From: Prasinococcaceae sp. CCMP 1430 | Taxonomy: Eukaryota > Plantae > Prasinodermophyta | Direction: 5' to 3' | Length of the DNA: 64,000 bases | Assembly (NCBI GenBank): GCA_013416795.1 | Contig: RQSC01000011.1 | Coordinates: 50,721-114,720 of the forward strand | In this document: one piece after another, positions 20,400 to 34,410 of the stretch | Numbering within the stretch: the first letter of the stretch is position 1 | Layout: each line of letters opens with the position of its first letter | Notes under the pieces: generated by a model | Database searches by the model: none | What the model was told of the DNA's origin: nothing | Seen by the model: only the letters and a program-made list of their open reading frames with translations | Program-made: the position numbers and the translations under genes

Positions 20400-21456
20400 G
20401 CGCGCGAGTGGCCGCCGCCGCAGCGGCGGCGGCGGCGGCGCTCGCGCGCGCGCGTCCCCAGGTGTAACGCGCGCTGCCTGGATGTGCGCGCTGCCTCTCG
20501 CCGGCGCCGGCACTGCCGCCGCCGCCGCCGCCGCTGCGGCGCCGCGCCGTGCGCCTCGCTCGGGAGGGAGATTCGCCAATGTTCGTCGTACACCCTCACT
20601 TTGAATAAGTTCCGGTTGATGCCGCATGCATTTGATACAGTAGGACTACGTACGTACAGTCAAGTCCTGGACGCGCGAGTCGGCGCTGCGCGCGCGCGCG
20701 CGCGCGCGCGGCCAACCGCCGGCGGTTACATTGGAAAATATGCCGTCAAAAAACATGTTCTCACGTGCCCAGGACGTAACGGTACTACAGCACAGTACTA
20801 CCATCCGGATGGTGGATGTGTCCAGAAGAAGAAACTGCCTCATCAGAGTCTCTCGCCGAAACAGCGAAACCGCCAACCACCACCGCGCGCCGTAGCGACC
20901 TGCGGGGGCGCCGTAGCTCGAGCGGCGAGGCGCCCGGGGCGCGGTGGGGGCGCGCCACGCGGCGAGCAGGGCGCGCCTCGGGGCGATCTCCCGGGCCGAG
21001 GCGCCCGCCCCCGAGGCGGGTGGGTGGGCACACGCTCCGGCTCTCGGCTCCGCCGCCCTCGCGTTCGTCTGGCGCGATGGGGCCCGCACCGGACCAGGGG
21101 GGCTCTGTGGGAGGTCAGGCTGTGCAGCGCCGCGCGAGTGCGAGCCTGGGCGCCGCGTGGCGCCGCACGAACGGCACCGCTGCGCTGCGCACGCTGCCGT
21201 GCGCGGGCATCGGCGAGGCGTTCCCCGCGGGAGCGCCCCCGCGCGCGCTCCCTTGCGGGCCGCTTCGCCCCCGCGACGTGCACGGGGGGCGTTCTCAGTG
21301 CCTTGCTGTGGCGATAGCAAAGCGACGCGGCGCGATGGCTCGACTCGTGCGCGTGGCGCGACCTCAGCGCGTCCGCCCAGTCTGCTGCATCTGCTGCTGA
21401 CGCGTGCCCTCTGCCACCCCGCCCACCTCTCCGTGTGCCCTAGTCCCTGTGAACAG

Positions 21457-24382
21457 GTTCCCCCTGGAGGTGCGGCGTTACCTCGAGGCCTTCGACACCA
21501 ACGGCGACGGCATAGTGGACGTGAGCGAGCTGAAGCGCGCGGCGCAGCAGCTGCAAGACGCGCGCGAGGGCAAGCTGACGGTGGGCATGTTCCCGGAGCG
21601 GCTGCACGAGACGGTGCGCGCGCTGGACGACGAGGGCAACGGCGTGCTGGAGATCGACGAGATCACCGACATGGTCGAGACCTACGCCGCGCTCAAGGAG
21701 GCCAACCGCAAGGGCGAGATTAACATAAGTACGCTGCCGCGCGAGATCCAGCCCACGCTCAAGGTGTTTGACATGGACGGCGACGGCACGGTGGCGCCAA
21801 TGGAGCTCGCGCGCGGCGCCGAGCTCTACCTCGAGTCCAAGAAGATGGTCAAGAAGCTCAGCAAGCTCGCTGTCGCGCTGCTGCTGCTAATGGGCATCAT
21901 GCTGGCGGCCATTGCCGGCATGACCATCGCCGTGGTGGAGATGGCCAAGGAGACGAGCACGGCGGCCGATGGCAAGATGACGGTCAAGAACTCGGGCGGC
22001 AAGGAGACGGCCGTGGCCACCAACCAGAACGAGCTGGAGCTGCCGCTGGGCGCGATGCCCTTCATGCCGACGGATGCGGGCGTCGCCAGGAACATGAAGC
22101 GCATCTCCGTCGTCAACAAGAACACGGGCCTGGAGCTTGAGCGTGAAGTGGCGGGCGTCGACCTCCTGCGCAACGTGTCGCTGCGCATCGTGACCACGAT
22201 GGGCGACTCAATCACCTACGAGGTTGATGGCAGTTCCGACATGAACGTCACCCTCGCCTCGGGCGAGTGGTGGGAATCCAACGCGCTGTGCGGCCACTGC
22301 CAGTCGATCAACGTTATTGCGACGCCAGAGATCCTCGAGGGTCTCGAGCGCGCTTACGCCGCCATCGATGAGGAGGTGGACGCGGAGGTGCGCCGCACGC
22401 TGCTGCACACGGTGGGCGAGACGCCCGATGACAACGCGCATTGGGCCGAGCACGGCTCCAGGAACAACATGGCGCCCGCCCACCTCGCTGTCACCTCGGC
22501 CGAATACCTGGCTGCGCGCGCCGCGTACGACGCGTGCAACTGCGCCTTCGAGGGTGACCCGTGGTGGGCCATCTGGTCTGGCAAGTTCTGGTGGCGCGAC
22601 CACTCGCACGCATTTGCGTACACTGACGCCACCGGCATCGAGCACACGGTGTGCAGCTACGCCAAGCCGCTGTGGGGATGGGTGTGGTCGCCCACCGAGC
22701 GTGGCCAGCCCACGTACTGGTGGGATTGGTGGGGTTACGGCTGGAGATGGCGCTATGTGGCATGCCTCGCAGACTCGGGCTGCGCCTACGGCCAGTGGAA
22801 CCGCTGGACGGGCTGGTGGTTCGTCACCGGCGGCGAGTGGCAGTGCTACGACGCGGCGCGCGGCGCAGGCGCGCACGCCTTCTTCCACAACGACTGCGAC
22901 GGCAGCGAGTCGGATGAGGTAAAGATCGAGTGCTGCTGGGCGCAGTACAACTCGCAGGACACCGACGGCGATGGTCTGAGCAATGCCGCGGAGATGCGAC
23001 TGGGCAGCGACCCGTACGATGCTGACACGGATGGGGACTACGTCCCGGATGGCGACGACCCCAACCCGCTGACCAAGGACAGCTGGCCGGACTCTGACGG
23101 CGACGGCCTGAATGACGAGCAGGAGAAGCGCCGCTACGGGACCGACTGGAATGTGTCGGACACGGACGGCGATGGGCTGTCGGATTTCGAGGAGGTCACG
23201 CGTGCGCAGGCGACCGATCCCTTGAATAATGACACCGACGCAGATGGCCTCAGTGATTCTTTTGAGCAAGGTGGGCAGTATAGCACTGATCCGCTCAATG
23301 CCGATTCCGACAACGACGGGCTCAGCGATGGCGACGAGGTGAATGTGCATTTTACGAGCGCGAGAGACGCAGACTCAGACGGAGACACGCTGAGCGACTC
23401 GAAGGAGATCGAAATCGGCACCGATCCGAACAACGCGGACACAGACTATGACGGTCTCTTTGACGGCGCGGAGCTCTCCATGGGCACCGACCCGAACAAC
23501 CCGGACACGGATGGCGACGGTCTCTTTGATGGTGAGGAGAAGAGCGTTCCTGATCATCTCTTCGAAGGCTCTAACCCTAGTGCTATGAATTGCGACAGCG
23601 GCAATGGGTACTGCGCTTTTGCGAATCCTGCACAAGGCATGCAGCGAACGGGCACGGATCCGCTGAAAAACGACACAGATGGTGATGGGATAGGCGATTT
23701 GGACGAACTCAACAGGACACAGTACACATTGGGTACTCGCTGGCGACATCCCCAGCGGCCGTCCGGCACCGGCACCGGCACTGACCCCAATCAGCATGAC
23801 ACGGACTCGGATGGGCTGTCAGATAGTGAGGAGGTGGACCTTGGCACTGACCCCAACGATCGCGACACGGACAAGGATGGCCTTTGGGATGGTGCGGAGG
23901 TCCATCAGCTCAAGACCAATCCGCTCAACTACACGGTGCTCTCACCGCCTCCGTCGCCTCCACCGCCTCCCGTGCCGCCACCACCGGACGCTCCGCCACC
24001 GAAGGCGCCGCCACCGAATGCTCCGCCACCAAACGCGCCGCCACCGAAGGCTCCGCCACCGAAGGCGCCGCCACCGAAGGCTCCGCCACCGAACGCGCCG
24101 CCACCGAACGCTCCGCCACCGAAGGCGCCGCCACCGAACGCTCCGCCACCGAACGCTCCGCCACCGAAGGCTCCGCCACCGGACGCTCCGCCACCGAACG
24201 CGCCGCCACCGAATGCTCCGCCACCGAATGCTCCCCCACCGAACGCGCCGCCACCGAACGCTCCCCCACCGAACGCTCCGCCACCAAAGGCTCCGCCACC
24301 GAACGCGCCGCCACCGAACGCGCCGCCACCTAACGCTCCGCCGCCGGACGCGCCGCCGCCGGACGCGCCGCCGCCGTTCTAA
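21457..24382 (+). CDS. Type II membrane protein: EF-hands, TM helix, Trp/Cys-rich domain, 12 TSP3-like Ca-binding repeats, Pro-rich tail; 5' exon unresolved
   Basis: EF loops DTNGDGIVDVSE, DDEGNGVLEIDE and DMDGDGTVAPME; hydrophobic LAVALLLLMGIMLAAIAGMTIAVV; repeated D[TS]DxDGL.D..E...GTDP. Acceptor gaacag ends at 21456. Confidence 0.8.
23978..24378 (+). repeat. 15-bp coding minisatellite (~26 units) encoding PPP[N/K/D]A
   Basis: Unit of the type ccgccaccgaacgct, read directly. Confidence 0.95.
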
Positions 24383-24590
24383 GTCGACCTCGCGCGCGAT
24401 GGCAGCCTGCTGGTCGCGACTGCGCCGCGCCGCTTCGTGGAGGGGCAATTGCTGTATGAGTATTGATTGGCCGACAAAGGATGGCGTCGCGCGGTCGTAC
24501 GTCGTAAGCTGCCAACGTGGCCATGCAGAGAGGCGCTCTGCGATCCGGTGCCTTGCGCATACTGCTGAGGATGCGTGGCTAAACTTACGA

Positions 24591-24610
24591 CAGAGAGAGA
24601 GAGAGAGAGA
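24591..24610. repeat. (GA)n microsatellite abutting an assembly gap
   Basis: Read directly. Confidence 0.85.
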
Positions 24611-24988
24611 NNNNNNNNNNNNNNNNNNNNNNNNNNNGGCGGCCGCCGCCGCGGTCGCGCGTGCGGTGGCTCCCGCGCGACAGGGCGTACGCGGTCGCCC
24701 GTGCGTCGACGCATGCTAAAGGCGCCAGAGCTCACCAAGTCGGGGCGCTTCGACCAGCGCGGCGCGGCCCTACCACTTGCGTGAAAAGCGCGCGCGGTAT
24801 TCAGTCCACAATTCCACATCAATTTGCACTAAATGCGCTTTGCTCGGGTTGCGCCCGACCTTGCACGCCTCTCCGCATGCGGATGGATGTGTGCGCGGGG
24901 TCCGCATGCGCGCCCCCGCTTGCACGCGCCCGCTTTGAGTTGCCCGCGTCAGCTAGGACGGGGGAGGGAGGAAAGGGAGACGCACATA

Positions 24989-25070
24989 CACACTCGTACG
25001 AGCAGCAGCAGCAGCGAAGAGGGTGCGATTAAAGTGAAGGAAGACGCAAGCGCATGGTTGCGTAGCGCGC
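24989..25070 (+). repeat. Dispersed direct repeat, copy 1 (core AGGGTGCGATTAaAGTGAAGGAAGACGCAAGCGCAtGGTTGCGTAGCGCGC, with a CAG-rich 5' extension shared with copy 3)
   Basis: Aligned by eye to the copies at 25283, 27202 and 27696. Confidence 0.9.
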
Positions 25071-25084
25071 CTGCCAAAGGTCGA

Positions 25085-25152
25085 TGGCCGCGCGCGCGGT
25101 GTGGCCGCGCGCGCGGTGTGGCCGCGCGCGCGGTGTGGCCGCGCGCGCGGTG
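25085..25152 (+). repeat. 17-bp tandem array, (TGGCCGCGCGCGCGGTG)x4
   Basis: Four exact units read directly. Confidence 0.95.
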
Positions 25153-25284
25153 TGTATTGGCAGGCAAGAAGCTCGCGATGGCAATTGCGTATACGCCCTG
25201 CGAGGAGTTCATGGCAAGCAGATGTACCTCGGCAGCTTTCCAATACAGGCTGACGCCATAGAGAGTTTACTTCAAGTAGTGTAG
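25153..25284 (+). pseudogene. Truncated AP2-domain-like fragment
   Basis: VYALRGVHGKQMYLGSFPIQADA resembles AP2 strand 3 plus helix start (GKxxYLGxF...EEAA); the first half of the domain is missing. Confidence 0.45.
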
Positions 25285-25337
25285 GGTGCGATTACAATAC
25301 GAGAAGACGCAAGCGCAAGGTTGCGTAGCGCGCGTGT
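25283..25337 (+). repeat. Dispersed direct repeat, copy 2
   Basis: agggtgcgattacaatacgagaagacgcaagcgcaaggttgcgtagcgcgcgtgt. Confidence 0.9.
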
Positions 25338-25352
25338 GTAAGATCTAGGTGC

Positions 25353-27200
25353 ATGATGTGGCCGCGCGCGCGGTGTGGCCGCGCGCGCGGTGTGGCCGCG
25401 CGCGCGGTGTGGCCGCGCGCGCGGTGTGCGCGCGCGCGGTGTCAGGAACAAAGTGTCGATGATGACGTGATCTTCATGGGCGTCGTCACTGCAGACGAGG
25501 CCCGCTCTCGTCGCAAGATCCAGGATGAGGCGGATGCAAGGCTCGCCAGAGAGGCTGCACAGGCCCAGCAGAGGGCCAGGGCAATGGAGCGGGAGGAACG
25601 CATCGCGGCTGGCCGGGCAGAGGACGCAGCACGTAAGCGCAAGTTGCCGACCCCTGACGGAAAGGAGTTTTTCTGCTGCACCCACTGCGAGGCAATCAAC
25701 CGCTACGTAAAGGCCACCAATGTGTGCAACACATTCACCTGTTCCAGGTGCGGCCAGGTCTCGATTGCGTGGCGGAAAGAAACGCGTGCAGCCTCGAAGG
25801 CACGACAGCACCAGAAGTCGCAGTTTGCCCAAGCTGTTGCAACAAGCGCCAAGGCAGCGGCTTGGGAAGGGGAGACGTCGTTGTCGAAGAAGAAACAGCC
25901 GAAGAAGCAACAGTGCACAGGCGGCTCAAGGAAGTCGCCTTTGACCGACGCACGCCTCGACACCAAAGACAAGCACGCGCACGAGTTTGCTGGCCACACT
26001 CTGGGCAAGCTAGACGAGCGCACCACTCAACATGTGGGGGTCATCGCCGCTCGCATTGTTGATGAAAGCCATCTTGTGCGCAAAGCGGCACTAGACGCTC
26101 TCGGCAAGCTTGGTGAACACGCCACACCGCACATTGGTGCCATCGCCGCACGCCTGGAGGATGCCAGATCCTTGGTGCGTACAGCGGCTATTGGTGCGCT
26201 TGGTCGGCTTGGTGAGCACGCCGCCTCGCAAGTGCATGCGGTAGCCGCATGCATCGACGACAAGGACTTGCAGACGCGTGAGGCAGCCATCAACGCACTT
26301 GGCAAGCTCGGCAAGCATTCCGCGTCCCATGTGGAGTCAATCATCGCATGCCTCGGCGACGACAGCATGCGAGTACGTAAGGCGGTTGTTTCCGCGCTCG
26401 GTGAGCTAGGTGAGCACTCCTTGCCACACGTTGATGCTATTGCCGCACGCGTTGAAGACAAGCACTGCGAGGTGCGCGATGCGGCTGTTCAAGCTGTTCA
26501 AGCCCTTGGAAAGGTCTTGGAGCGTGCTGTGCGTGTCGCTGATATCAAGGCGGACAAGAATGCAAACGAAGAGTGCGCGCAAGGAGGGAAACCCGCGCCG
26601 CTGCCGCCTCCGCCAGAGCCCGAGGCCGAGGCCGAGGCCGAGGCCGAGGCTGCGCCCGAGGCCGAGGCCGCCGCGCCGAATCACAAGCCGGGCCAGCAAA
26701 AGCGGCAGCGGGCGCCCAAGGCGCCCGCCTACAGCGGGCGGGGCCGCCCACGCGGCTACAAGACAGCAAGGACGCGGGACAGGGAGCGGCGACATGAGCT
26801 CGCGGCCAAGCTTCCGCGCGACGCGAGAGCGCGCTTCGTAAAAAAAGGGAAAGCAGCCATAAACTCGAATTCCGCCCGCGACAAACGCGAGAGGGGCATG
26901 CACGGCGAAGAGAGGCTGCCATCAACAGGCGCGGGCAAGAACGACAGCGTGGGCGGCGCGCCGGCGCAGAGGGCCGCGCAGGCGACCAAGCAGACCATCA
27001 CCGCCACCGCGGCGCTCAGCTACATTCACGACGTCAAGAACAAGTTCAAGGACAACATCGGCATCTACTACAAGTTCCTCAAGATCATGACGCAATTCAA
27101 GGCGCAGGATATCACGCCTCAGCGCTTGATTAAGCAGGTGAACGAGCTCTTTGCAGACCACGAGGATCTTATTCAGGGCTTTGCAGCTTTCGTGCCATAG
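25353..27200 (+). CDS. 615-aa mosaic protein: SIM-like motif, coiled coil, C4 zinc ribbon, ~6 HEAT repeats, AT-hook, C-terminal PAH (Sin3-type) domain
   Basis: DDDVIFMG; CTHC-x17-CSRC; 31-aa repeats such as IAARLEDARSLVRTAAIGALGRLGEHA; GRGRPRG; ALSYIHDVKNKF...YYKFLKIMTQFK...VNELFADHEDLIQGFAAFVP. Confidence 0.7.
   Translation: MMWPRARCGRARGVAARAVWPRARCARARCQEQSVDDDVIFMGVVTADEARSRRKIQDEADARLAREAAQAQQRARAMEREERIAAGRAEDAARKRKLPTPDGKEFFCCTHCEAINRYVKATNVCNTFTCSRCGQVSIAWRKETRAASKARQHQKSQFAQAVATSAKAAAWEGETSLSKKKQPKKQQCTGGSRKSPLTDARLDTKDKHAHEFAGHTLGKLDERTTQHVGVIAARIVDESHLVRKAALDALGKLGEHATPHIGAIAARLEDARSLVRTAAIGALGRLGEHAASQVHAVAACIDDKDLQTREAAINALGKLGKHSASHVESIIACLGDDSMRVRKAVVSALGELGEHSLPHVDAIAARVEDKHCEVRDAAVQAVQALGKVLERAVRVADIKADKNANEECAQGGKPAPLPPPPEPEAEAEAEAEAAPEAEAAAPNHKPGQQKRQRAPKAPAYSGRGRPRGYKTARTRDRERRHELAAKLPRDARARFVKKGKAAINSNSARDKRERGMHGEERLPSTGAGKNDSVGGAPAQRAAQATKQTITATAALSYIHDVKNKFKDNIGIYYKFLKIMTQFKAQDITPQRLIKQVNELFADHEDLIQGFAAFVP
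25359..25441 (+). repeat. 17-bp tandem array: 4 exact units plus one 15-bp degenerate unit
   Basis: Same unit as 25085-25152. Confidence 0.95.
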
Positions 27201-27201
27201 G

Positions 27202-27260
27202 CACACGAGTACCAGCAACAGCAGCGAAGAGGGTGCGATTACAGTGAAGGAGGACGCAAG
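27202..27260 (+). repeat. Dispersed direct repeat, copy 3 (3'-truncated, carries the CAG-rich 5' extension)
   Basis: cacacgagtaccagcaacagcagcgaagagggtgcgattacagtgaaggaggacgcaag, aligned to 24989-25050. Confidence 0.9.
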
Positions 27261-27693
27261 GTCAAGTTCAGTTCCTCCACAGCGTCGATGATGGAGAGGA
27301 CCATGGCGTCGGGGTCCAGCTTGCGGATCTCGGTTGTACGTGCGAAGGGTGGTCTGCTCCGCACGCTGCAGAGCGTCGCCTGCGTGTGCGAGGAACGCGT
27401 CAGCGAGTTAAGCAGCGCGGTCATGGACCGCGGTGCGTTGCGAGTACCCCCTTACCGCCCCCTGGGGGTCGTCGGGCAGGGAGGTGACCGCCGTCAGGTC
27501 CGGCAGGGGGGCTGCGGTCGGCGTCGACGCAGACGATGCTGCGGCGGGCGGCGCAGGGGGCAGACGGGTGAGCGCCTGCTGCAGCTGCTGCAGCAGCGGC
27601 TGCAGCTGCTGCATCTCCTGCCGCTGGTGGGCGATCAGCTCGCTGAGCTCGCTGAGCTGGGTGTTCTGGGTGGTCTGGGCCTCCTCCAGCTGC
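27261..27693 (-). pseudogene. Fragment of a spliced gene on the minus strand (Gln-rich coiled coil, Pro/Ala linker, 76-nt intron at 27455-27380)
   Basis: QLEEAQTTQNTQLSELSELIAHQRQEMQQLQPLLQQLQQAL...DDPQGA, then GTAAGG...GCTGAC...CACGCAG, then ATLCSV...EIRKLDPDAMVLSIIDAVEELN. Confidence 0.5.
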
Positions 27694-27695
27694 TA

Positions 27696-27750
27696 AGAGT
27701 GCGATTACAGTGCAGGAAGACGCAAGCGCAAGGTTGCGTAGCGCGCGTGT
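27696..27750 (+). repeat. Dispersed direct repeat, copy 4
   Basis: agagtgcgattacagtgcaggaagacgcaagcgcaaggttgcgtagcgcgcgtgt. Confidence 0.9.
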
Positions 27751-28141
27751 CTGAGATCGAGCGCGGCGCGCGCGTGTTTTTTTCGCGTGCGGTACGGAGG
27801 GCGCGAGCGCGTGCGCGCGCCACTGTGTGGTCGTAATACACGCGGGCTTGAGGGGGAGCACGACCGTCCCCTCGCGCCCGCGCGCGCGCGCCCGCGCGGC
27901 ATCCTCAGTTCCCTCTCACACAGCGCATGCGCGCAGCGCACGCGCGCGCACGCGCGAGATTCCGCTCGGGGAACGCGCGCGCGGCGGAAAGCAAGACACT
28001 GCCACTGTCGCACCCTTTGCAGCAGTCACTGTTGAAGCACGTTCTTACTTCCGCACGAATGCTAAAAGCGGGGGCCATGAGTGATAACCTACGAAAATGA
28101 GGCTGCCAACGATTCCAGCCTCGCGCGCACACAGCGCTCGT

Positions 28142-30130: not shown

Positions 30131-31331
30131 CGCCGCCAGCCGTCTCTGCAGCGTGGAACGTTCCTCCCCTCCCCTGCGCTGCCTCCCCCCCCCTTCCCCC
30201 TCGTGCTCTGTGCCCGCCGACCTGCGGTTTCGGCTTCGGTGCCGGTTCCGTCCCGGCGCCGGAGTGCTTCGGACTCCCTCGGATTTGGTGGGGTTCGAAG
30301 ACGGATTCCAGCGGATAAGGGAGCGCAAAAAGACCTCGTTCGAGGGGGCACACCGGAATACTTTCATCGAATCCATGCGAATCCATACTGAGGTCAAAGC
30401 GCAGGCCAGCGCACGCCGAGTCGAACTCCTGCTGCAGGCGCGCGCGGGCGCGGCGCGCGGGCGATTGGGAAATCCGCGGAAGGCATCCAATCCGATGCGC
30501 CTTCCGTCGAGTGGCGCGATCGGTGCGCGATGGTGGTTGCCGTCCCCACGGGCTTCGCGGATCGACATTTCGGCAGGCGCGCCGGCGCGCGGGCCTGCCG
30601 GAGGACGGATTCCGCTCGATTGGGTGGAATCATCGTAACGTCGCATTTTTTGGAATCCACTGTATGTCAAACGGCGGGTGGTCGTGAGGGTTCCGCCGAT
30701 GTGTGGGGATTTTTGTGCGTGAGCGTTTCGCGTGTGGGGGGGCGGTTCGGCGCGCGCGCACGGCGTGGCCGCCCGCGGGCGCTCCCCCGCGGCGCTGGGC
30801 GCCGCGAGATGACATGTCCGGGGAGAGTGGCGCCGCCGCCGCACCCCGCACGCGGCGCTGCGCCCCGCCTCTCCGCGCCGCCGCCAAAAAAGTCAGGCAG
30901 CGAAATCCTTTAATTTCATCAACGCAAAGGAAGCCATCGATCGCTCCCTTTCAAATTCGTCTATACTTGGTATCATACCCTCGGACACTGCCCCCTGGGG
31001 GTCTCTGCGTCGATACGGCATCCTCACTCGAGCATCCGGCGGAGGGAGAAGATGAGGCCACGCCCGGGCGCGCCTTGCAAGCAGTGGCGCACCGCCGCCA
31101 CCGCGCCGAGCGAGGATGAGGGGAAGGCGTGCGCGCGCTGCAGCTCGCGTGGCGCGCGATGCGCGCTCCGCTGACGGGCTGACCGATGCTGCTGGCCAGG
31201 CTGCCAGTGCACGTAAATGCGGAGGAGAAGGGGGTCCCGCCCGGGTATTGGCGAGGTTCGCACGTCGCACACGTTTTACTCGCTGGTTTGAACTCGCTCT
31301 GCCGCGCGCCGCGCCGCGCATACTACTACTA

Positions 31332-33018
31332 CTACGCCGTGGCTGCAGCCGCGCTTGACTCGCGGCCGTAGATGCGGGCGCCGCTGATGTCATCGTACGC
31401 CTCGCGCATGCTCCTCTCTACAGCCTCACAGAAGGCCTTCGAGTTCGCGAAGTCCTCCGGGTGCACGGCATCAGGAAACTTCACCTTCACGAGCATGCTG
31501 CGGTTGAGTATGTTGGCCGTGCCGCCGATGTTGTCGGTCGCGGGGTCCAAGCCGATGTCCTCCGAGTACCACAGCGCGACGGGCTGCACCGGCCGCCCGG
31601 CACTGTACGCCACCTGGAACGAGCCCTGGCGCAGGGGCATGGGCTCGCCGCGCACCTGGGAGGTGCCCTCCGGAAACACCAGGATGGGGTTCGTGGAGTC
31701 CTCGAGTCCCTCCCTGAGCGCTGCGCGCGCCGCCGCCCCGCTCGACTTGTCGCCGCGCCTGTACGGGATGCCGTCGAAGCGCTTGACCACGAAGTTGAGC
31801 AGCCATGCGCCGAGGCCCTCCTCGGCAATGTTCGACTTGACCAACACGCGAAGCATCATGTTCGAGCACATGCACAGCACGCCGTAGTCGAGCCACGAGT
31901 AGTGGTTGGACACCCACAGGCAGGACGTCGCTGGCCTACCGGCCGCGCCGCCGCTACGCCGCGTCATGGTGGCCGCGTTGGGCGAGGGGAGGCCGCCCAG
32001 CGGCGCCGCGCGCACGCCGCCGGCGCCGCCGTTGCCGTACGGCACGCCTTCCACCTGGATGGTGACGTCGTTTGAGCGCATGTACGACCGGAAGACGCCC
32101 ACGAGCAGGTCAACCCTGTCGATCGCGAGCGCCAGGAACATGCTCGGCATGTGCGCCAGGAACATGGCGGTGCACACCGCGGCCTTGAGCGTGGGCGAGG
32201 CGCGCATTGCGCTGCGCGCGGCCCACCGGAACAGCTGGCAGCGCCCCACGTGGAAGATCTCGTTGGGCGTGCCCTGGCCGCCGAGGCGGTGCTCGACGAA
32301 CTCGTTGACGCGCGACGTGCGCGAGCGGCGCGTGGCGCCGTGCCGCACCAGCGCGGCGCTGCCCCCGCAGCCGTTGTTCGACCCCCGCACGACGAAGCTG
32401 TCCACATCGAGCGACGCGTCGTCGGCCGTGCCGAAGTCCTCGCGGTGGTGCGCCATCATGAAGCACGCGATGTCGCGCTGCCAGCCCTCCGCTCGGCGGC
32501 AGGGCTCGCGGTAGCTGGGGTAGCAGGCCGTCATGTTGTCGCTGACGATCTTGGTGTTGCTGGGGCTGTCCGCGATGTCCGTCATGACGAAGTCCACCGA
32601 CCAGTACGTCAGGCAGCAGCACATCATGTTGTACAGGCACACGCGCTGCAGGTGCTTCCCCTGGTGCTCGGGGAGGACCATCACCAGGCCGAGGTGGAGC
32701 ACGAGCTCGTGCACGTACGCTGCCTTGAAGGCCATGTGGAACATGGCGGGCTGGCCGGTGCGAGCGTCGTACACCACGAAGACGATTTTGTCGCCCATGT
32801 GGCGCGCGTCGTGCAGCGCGCGGTGCGGCAGCACCGAGCCGATGGTGCGCTGCGACATGTCGGCCATCAGGCGGCGCAGCCTCTCGGCGGCGGGGCCGGC
32901 GGGCGACGCCCAGCGCCGCGCGTAGTAGCGCCCCTTGAGGCCCGGCAGCGGGAGGTATCCGCCGTTGTCCGCCCACCGCCTCGCGGCGAGCAGCGTCGCG
33001 GCCGCCGCGGCGGCGGCG
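31332..33018 (-). CDS. GNAT-like domain fused to a PlsC/LPAAT-family acyltransferase; 5' end lost in the N-gap
   Basis: C-terminal NHYSWLD, FPEGT and GSFQVA...PVQPV acyltransferase motifs. N-terminal LHLGLVMVLPEHQGKHLQ resembles GNAT motif A. A hydrophobic segment lies between the two. Confidence 0.8.
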
Positions 33019-33946
33019 NNNNNNNNNNNNNNNNNNNNNNNNNNNNNNNNNNNNNNNNNNNNNNNNNNNNNNNNNNNNNNNNNNNNNNNNNNNNNNNNNN
33101 NNNNNNNNNNNNNNNNNNNNNNNNNNNNNNNNNNNNNNNNNNNNNNNNNNNNNNNNNNNNNNNNNNNNNNNNNNNNNNNNNNNNNNNNNNNNNNNNNNNN
33201 NNNNNNNNNNNNNNNNNNNNNNNNNNNNNNNNNNNNNNNNNNNNNNNNNNNNNNNNNNNNNNNNNNNNNNNNNNNNNNNNNNNNNNNNNNNNNNNNNNNN
33301 NNNNNNNNNNNNNNNNNNNNNNNNNNNNNNNNNNNNNNNNNNNNNNNNNNNNNNNNNNNNNNNNNNNNNNNNNNNNNNNNNNNNNNNNNNNNNNNNNNNN
33401 NNNNNNNNNNNNNNNNNNNNNNNNNNNNNNNNNNNNNNNNNNNNNNNNNNNNNNNNNNNNNNNNNNNNNNNNNNNNNNNNNNNNNNNNNNNNNNNNNNNN
33501 NNNNNNNNNNNNNNNNNNNNNNNNNNNNNNNNNNNNNNNNNNNNNNNNNNNNNNNNNNNNNNNNNNNNNNNNNNNNNNNNNNNNNNNNNNNNNNNNNNNN
33601 NNNNNNNNNNNNNNNNNNNNNNNNNNNNNNNNNNNNNNNNNNNNNNNNNNNNNNNNNNNNNNNNNNNNNNNNNNNNNNNNNNNNNNNNNNNNNNNNNNNN
33701 NNNNNNNNNNNNNNNNNNNNNNNNNNNNNNNNNNNNNNNNNNNNNNNNNNNNNNNNNNNNNNNNNNNNNNNNNNNNNNNNNNNNNNNNNNNNNNNNNNNN
33801 NNNNNNNNNNNNNNNNNNNNNNNNNNNNNNNNNNNNNNNNNNNNNNNNNNNNNNNNNNNNNNNNNNNNNNNNNNNNNNNNNNNNNNNNNNNNNNNNNNNN
33901 NNNNNNNNNNNNNNNNNNNNNNNNNNNNNNNNNNNNNNNNNNNNNN

Positions 33947-34410
33947 CCCGCGCGGCCGCGCAGCAGCCCGCCGCAGGACAAGGCGGCCCGCTCGCGGCCC
34001 ACGCGCTGGAGCGGCGCCAGTGGCGCGAGTACCACGCCGCGCAGCTGCAGGCGCAGGCGGAGCGGCAGCAGCGCGCGCAGTCGCCGGGCAAGCCTTCGGA
34101 GCCCTCCAGCCTCGAGGTGCGCAGCGGGCACTTCCGCGCGCCCGAGGTGCTGCCGCACCCCGACGCCGAGGCGGCACACAACGTCGCGGTCGGGGCGCAC
34201 CTCAGTGCGCTCCCAGGCCCGGCGCGAAAGTCGCCCGTGGCCAGCCCGCCCGCCGCGTGCCACGCCACCGCCACCGCCCACGGCAGCGGCGGCGGCGGGG
34301 ACGACGGCGAGCTGCTCTTCGGCGAATCGTTCGATGGCGCGCGCACGCCCCCGCAGCCGACGTCGCCGGCGCGATGCCCGCGCTCGCCGCTGCTCTCGGA
34401 GATCATGGCT
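33947..34410 (+). other. Coding-like segment after the gap; gene and strand assignment unresolved
   Basis: GC3-rich open frame LERRQWREYHAAQLQAQAERQQRAQ...; the in-register antisense frame is also open. Confidence 0.3.

Follow-up and report, generated by a model that had tools for sequence, protein, structure and literature searches.

Short interspersed elements (SINEs) and the 3′ tails of 5′-truncated long interspersed elements (LINEs) are very short non-coding units that combine one constant end with variable truncation, duplications of variable length, near-identical young copies and polymorphic insertions. Chimeric retrocopies, such as the U6/L1 chimeras of mammals, are formed by template switching of a reverse transcriptase. 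Gene fragments beside element ends are found in Helitron capture and in Pack-type Mutator-like elements (Pack-MULEs), and same-orientation repeats between unrelated pieces make up integron arrays. Replitron-1 and Replitron-N1 of Chlamydomonas reinhardtii have one sharp end, one 'fuzzy' end, target duplications of variable length and non-autonomous derivatives (PMC10288648). Prasinoderma belongs to an early-branching green lineage, and no description of its active mobile elements was found in the literature; the genome of Prasinoderma coloniale CCMP1413 is compact (25 Mb, 6.5% repeats) and has a PacBio assembly described as whole chromosomes (PMC7455551). We analysed a stretch of 64,000 nt from the prasinodermophyte Prasinococcaceae sp. 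CCMP 1430 (assembly GCA_013416795.1, contig RQSC01000011.1, positions 50,721 to 114,720, forward strand; hereafter the window, to which all coordinates refer), where four copies of a short repeat unit lie among unrelated pieces of sequence. The unit is probably a mobile element of some class, and the block that it forms is, on balance, a small nest of this element in an interval that evolves neutrally and separates two ordinary genes.

Copies 1 to 4 of the unit (40-85 nt), all on the plus strand, were located at 25013-25084, 25276-25358, 27223-27260 and 27690-27775. A 31-nt core occurred three times with at most one mismatch, compared with none expected (100 shuffles), and the 14-nt left part of the unit was found in 4/4 copies. 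The window is GC-rich eukaryotic DNA (GC about 0.62-0.70) with scaffold gaps, and a search of its whole length with a profile derived from the copies recovered just the four (E 1e-8 to 1e-24; runner-up E 0.5). Copies 1 and 3 are of type A. The former, at 24985-25084 in its full extent, consists of a CAG-rich 5′ extension, the core and a 15-nt tail, and the latter, at 27213-27260, is right-truncated past the motif GACGCAAG; the extension common to both covers 48 nt (94%, repeat family D17). Copy 2 (25276-25358) is the longest version of type B, the subtype that has been active recently and whose left end is GTAGTGTAGGG, and copy 4 (27690-27775) has the full core and a copy-2-like tail, followed by a degenerate GC-rich tract (family D13). 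Perfect tandem arrays of a GC-rich 17-mer directly follow copies 1 and 2 only, with 4.1 units at 25085-25154 and 5.2 units at 25359-25442, respectively.

These results bear on an earlier note on the same DNA, which had described four same-strand repeats at these starts with a CAG-rich extension in copies 1 and 3, and both descriptions were upheld. That note had also given four copies of a ~55 bp core, which does not apply to copy 3, cut off after about 38-48 nt, and had extended the similarity to ~85-90 bp with the downstream 17-mer included; the 17-mer is a tandem array found after copies 1 and 2 only, and copy 4 has just the degenerate GC-rich tail. Open reading frames (ORFs) end at repeat edges as it had reported (TAG 25282-25284, TAG 27198-27200 and an antisense TAA at 27239-27241 inside copy 3), because the unit carries stop codons in several frames.

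The locus was compared among nine independent environmental assemblies, reached through the cluster members of a 615-aa ORF at 25353-27200 (plus strand), for which public metagenomes contain a relative of 95% identity, and through the neighbours of these members. Five Tara scaffolds (L001, L003, L004, L010 and L011) were about 98% identical to the window, and L005, L006, L007 and L009 about 94.7%. Copies 1, 3 and 4 were found again in independent Tara assemblies of the 98% lineage, indicating that they are not artefacts of the window assembly. Copy 1 was present in every haplotype covering that part and is regarded as old. Copy 3 was kept in the five haplotypes of the 98% lineage and was not found in the other four, where the sequence diverges within its 5′ extension. 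Copy 4 was kept in L001, L003, L010 and L011; the L004 contig breaks off within this copy and retains its left part. Copy 2 and the arrays flanking it were seen in the window only. At a further breakpoint, L004:150-200, unrelated sequence lies upstream of the homologue of window position ~24800, and the joint has a weak likeness to the element's left part, with GGGTGCGAT once and GTGCGAT again 6 nt on (profile E 0.067).

The comparison showed that the type-B subtype is insertion-polymorphic, with three positions occupied in L005/L006 and empty in the window and in L001, L003 and L004. At the first of them, a 69-nt copy stands between duplicated octamers AGGAACAA, forming an 8-bp target-site duplication, and L001, L003 and L004 have the matching empty site with a single intact octamer. 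The second insertion is a 48-nt copy located 46 nt upstream of copy 1 and flanked by GG only, which sets the duplication at 2 bp at most, and its site is likewise empty in the other haplotypes. The third consists of a direct copy right after the stop codon of the 615-aa ORF and an inverted partial copy before it, a pair that folds into a near-perfect hairpin (-65.6 kcal/mol, z -10.4). The left terminus GTAGTGTAGGG is constant, the same terminal base being joined to four different left flanks, and on the right the copies are cut at no fewer than four different points, within the core or past it. When compared with copy 2 of the window, the type-B insertions of L005/L006 were identical at 71/71 and 60/60 positions (100%) and at 85/86 positions (98.8%). 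The orthologous flanks are 94.7% identical, a divergence that would predict about 11 differences in the 217 nt of these copies. Such near-identity across lineages that are about 5% diverged argues for a shared active source.

Orthologues of copy 1 in L001 and L003-L006 differ at five variable sites, a rate about that of the flanks, and such drift gives no sign of a function for the copy itself. From these alignments, the unit appears to behave like a mobile element with recent activity rather than like a functional motif under conservation. A regulatory or untranslated-region motif was ruled out, given the de novo insertion with a target duplication and the drift of old copies at about the rate of their flanks. 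The gain and loss of pieces at the repeats, for which the earlier note had proposed comparing the interval across strains, was borne out in so far as copy-bounded pieces are present or absent and new copies have been inserted; the integron, Helitron or Pack-type organisation that it had attached to the locus was not.

Regarding the class of the element, we lean slightly towards the view that short non-autonomous mobile elements, copied via RNA by target-primed reverse transcription (TPRT), have accumulated in a neutral, gene-poor interval. The retroposon mechanism specifically is a tentative assignment, with nearly as much to be said for it as against it. Provided that the minus strand is the sense one, the fixed end, the ragged other end, the variable duplications and the identical young copies together constitute the signature of TPRT. 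When read on the minus strand, the type-B copies all end at the same base and begin at four or more points, and a CTG-rich tract follows the type-A copies, the type-B copies being without a tail. The constant left end would then be the 3′ end of the element, and the ragged right ends would represent 5′ truncations or template switches. Template switches could also account for the two minus-sense gene relics that adjoin right-truncated copies, namely the antisense fragment at copy 3 and the right flank of L005. The partner encoding the enzyme would reside elsewhere in the genome, and separately acquired copies would bracket whatever lies between them: an ORF that is resident and in decay, the relic of a gene, and a short piece whose origin is uncertain. 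Full units measure at least 85 nt and most copies are shortened on one side. Of the classes considered, a retroposon-type short interspersed element is the most likely.

Several observations weigh against copying by TPRT and against the comparison on which it is based. Target duplications of variable length were observed in n=2 insertions with both flanks resolved. All comparison haplotypes are short-read metagenome assemblies, in which paths across an 85-nt repeat can be chimeric; the right flanks of L005 and L006 differ, an example of such a possible path. Neither a poly(A) nor a simple-repeat tail follows the active type-B copies, no tRNA-, 5S- or 7SL-like head was recognised, and no partner LINE was identified, in all of which the element differs from SINEs and LINE tails. 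Its copies are known from one locus only, as exact-pattern scans of Joint Genome Institute (JGI) metagenomes and IMG/VR and protein-word searches with the translated copies returned none outside it. No enzyme partner, reverse transcriptase or other, came to light, and the 25 best-represented Pfam families of large window ORFs include no mobile-element enzyme, Rep and helicase among them. The inverted partial copy stands on the wrong side for classical twin priming. The joining of a truncated copy in the same sense to an unrelated transcript piece, seen both at copy 3 and its antisense relic and at the L005 copy and its right flank, resembles chimeric retrocopies; unlike those, both relics seem to retain putative introns, which would need pre-mRNA templates or a DNA-level process, and no duplication is delimited around the whole chimera.

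Small-RNA ancestry was addressed with ARAGORN, which detected no tRNA in the element, and with Rfam searches of the region and of the element alone, which gave nothing for the region and no match on the element at E up to 10. A SINE-type RNA polymerase III head derived from a small RNA (tRNA, 5S, 7SL or snRNA) was rejected on these results, and a resemblance to U6 snRNA noticed by eye (ACAGAGA and GCGCAAGG segments) likewise had no support from Rfam. The fold of a single copy was not significant (z about 0). The minus-strand TGTAA near the fixed end was considered as a UGUAA poly(A) signal and set aside, since two neighbouring genes were without such a signal by eye. An introner was also considered: the 69-nt copy starts with GT and ends with AG, but splicing there would leave an extra octamer, and the other copies lack the terminal AG. 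A DDE transposon, a miniature inverted-repeat transposable element or a Pack-MULE was dismissed because the unit has no inverted termini and the duplications are 8 bp in one case and at most 2 bp in the other; the sole inverted structure is the partial copy beside one insertion.

The constant left end, the variable right end and the unrelated DNA to the right of each copy could alternatively be produced on the plus strand by a rolling-circle element of the HUH type (Helitron-, IS91- or Replitron-like), in which transfer would start at the constant end and stop variably or run on. The closest parallel is Replitron-1, a green-lineage element with one sharp end, for which 'fuzzy' right ends and variable-length target duplications are reported in a paper that also mentions Prasinoderma coloniale (PMC10288648). 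Replitrons are bounded by short direct repeats and use an RG target, and their non-autonomous form is about 910 bp long (PMC10288648). Neither the repeats nor the target was recognised in the element, which measures 50-85 bp, and no Rep gene was seen. Moreover, neither a significant terminal hairpin nor direct terminal repeats were identified, Rep and helicase are missing from the Pfam families named above, and the right ends are cut inside the unit instead of running past a defined terminus, so that a rolling-circle origin is quite improbable. A Helitron in the strict sense was rejected, because the ends read GTAGTG... with ragged right ends, TC...CTRR termini and insertion between A and T are lacking, the 8-bp duplication is atypical and the fold has z about 0. 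The Helitron or Pack-type capture that the earlier note had proposed fares no better: gene fragments do lie beside element ends, but the defining termini, the insertion-site rule, terminal inverted repeats and duplications of fixed length are all missing. The integron-like alternative, in which site-specific recombination would move cassettes between repeat sites, draws on the same-orientation repeats around unrelated pieces that vary between haplotypes. This was judged extremely improbable and the cassette array was rejected: the host is eukaryotic, no attC-like hairpin was found, and the listed Pfam families hold housekeeping domains only, with no integrase or other recombinase, in line with the remark of the earlier note that none is visible. 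Truncation points also vary between copies, instead of sharing the single crossover point that site-specific exchange would use, the rearrangements seen so far have non-identical breakpoints, a target-site duplication is present, and the largest 'cassette' is resident in every haplotype.

A second group of alternatives dispenses with a transposon or with part of the locus. Error-prone repair in a fragile interval, by template switching, filler DNA or ectopic gene conversion, could have copied local sequence repeatedly into a patchwork. No two known copies are more than about 3 kb apart, breakpoints fall at the GC-rich 17-mer arrays and at the inverted duplication, one event is a replacement (207 nt out, 357 nt in) and no simple insertion, and the wider region has other large indels that are free of the element. 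Such repair is nevertheless a quite unlikely origin of the locus, given one clean insertion whose target is duplicated over 8 bp and whose empty site is intact, the same exact terminus at four different left flanks, and copies of 100% identity across 5%-diverged lineages, the last of which points to a shared active source. That replacement concerns the copy-2 region, and for the 'cassette' 25085-25441 an assembly artefact was considered, in which a short array-flanked contig was looped into a gapped scaffold. Here, spacer 1, copy 2 and both arrays stand in for a 207-nt unique segment that is the same in all five environmental haplotypes covering the site, none of which has the window version (5/5). 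The segment lies between two identical arrays of 68-86 nt, the second of which adjoins the point where homology to the other haplotypes restarts, and it is 450 nt from a scaffold gap of 27 N (24611-24637, ~350 nt upstream of copy 1), at whose edge, precisely at 24638, homology of the Tara haplotypes to the window picks up again. On the other hand, the junction sequences must exist in reads, the type-B element is real in four independent assemblies, and the artefact would touch one of the four copies only. It is unlikely on this evidence, and the copy-2 segment represents either a derived rearrangement of the strain or an assembly loop through the identical arrays.

The pieces between the copies were examined individually, and their reading as captured gene fragments in the earlier note was not supported for any of the three. 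The 615-aa ORF, which encodes HEAT repeats and a C-terminal PAH domain (Pfam), was present in 9/9 haplotypes covering it, indicating that it is resident and not a captured mosaic. Its first ~30 codons in the window are translated 17-mer array, and the Tara versions begin in the 207-nt segment. The ratio of nonsynonymous to synonymous differences per site (pN/pS) was 0.84 in the comparison with L005 (60 differences) and about 2 in that with L001, compared with 0.22-0.27 for the SMP-C2 gene next to it. The ORF is frameshifted into 312 + 270 aa in L005-L007 and L009, and a 100-aa EukProt entry, P0065, matches its C-terminal end without a difference. We read it, from these substitution patterns, as an apparently decaying or at best unconstrained gene in an interval that shows no protein-level constraint by pN/pS. 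The synonymous divergence of the SMP-C2 gene (28145-30193) against L001 is about 0.05, several-fold above the total divergence of ORF 25476-27197 and the spacers (about 0.01-0.015), an excess that could reflect either unusually mutable GC-rich third positions or a younger coalescence of the junk interval.

Spacer 1 had been described as an AP2-like gene piece. Its 44-codon frame (25155-25275, plus strand, stop TAG 25282-25284), seen in the window only, matched no Pfam family at E up to 1, which gives that description no domain support. The antisense gene relic (27242-27692, minus strand) consists of two exons that are in frame across a 76-nt putative GT..AG intron (27380-27455, placed from the reading frames). 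Exon A (27456-27692) encodes a coiled coil, whose SlyX-type similarity is weak and falls short of the Pfam cutoff; exon B (27242-27379), whose last seven codons and stop lie inside copy 3, has a distant likeness to a WHIM1-type repeat unit (E 2e-6, 30% identity). The intron-bearing structure that the earlier note had seen is thus readable, but its capture from a donor gene found no support among 1.84 billion representative proteins, where exon B matched itself and two distant repeat proteins. The fragment has a pN/pS of about 1 on five differences. Look-up of the ORF in the right flank of L005 matched the same contig only. In L007 and L009 the antisense fragment is gone, and a 60-nt tract resembling the reverse complement of the 17-mer links the ORF end to the 3′ region of the SMP-C2 gene; its imperfect copies (L007:1779-1837, L009:1780-1838) fill the whole spacer there. 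The occurrence of 17-mer arrays at three rearrangement junctions suggests that they may belong to a longer parent element.

For annotation, the implication is that neither the 615-aa 'mosaic protein' nor either of the two small 'gene pieces' is likely to be a functional gene. An element of 50-85 nt that shows no difference between ocean populations 5% diverged and is polymorphic among Tara samples would offer a handle on current transposition in this lineage and a marker of population structure. It is very unlikely that the element marks a mosaic-building process, in which a polymerase or reverse transcriptase would start at or run to the fixed end and jump between templates, joining unrelated gene pieces; if it did, the locus would be a natural site of exon or fragment shuffling in a very compact green-lineage genome.

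The block is flanked by an EF-hand/TSP3 gene on the left and the SMP-C2 (synaptotagmin-like) gene on the right. Domains found in the large ORFs of the window include BOP1, prolyl oligopeptidase, AFG1 ATPase, kinase, PrmA, ABC transporter and EngA-type GTPase, and the listed families agree with the otherwise housekeeping landscape of the earlier note. Large indels free of the element distinguish the window from the Tara haplotypes at 20643-20841, 21087-24637 and 30194-30824, and such indels are common enough between lineages that the block is not uniquely unstable. About 200 nt at 20643-20841 have no counterpart in L001, a lineage only about 2% diverged. The segment 21087-24637, comprising the whole EF-hand/transmembrane/TSP3-repeat gene with its flanks, is missing in L001, where ~48 nt of GGC repeats join 21086 to 24638; the gene is missing in L005 as well, whose sequence passes from about 20582 straight to about 24800. 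In the window this segment is joined on the right through the 27-N gap, and the difference may reflect either presence/absence polymorphism of the gene or a contig placed wrongly. A low GC fraction (0.065) at 33001-34000 probably marks a second run of N of roughly 1 kb, in which case several long listed ORFs in 31.3-34.6 kb read through a gap. At 30194-30824, 630 nt upstream of the SMP-C2 coding region are replaced by about 26 nt in every Tara haplotype covering them (L001, L003, L010 and L011), and this segment supplies much of the 5′ extension that distinguishes the 900-aa ORF of the window from the 662-aa gene called in the Tara contigs.

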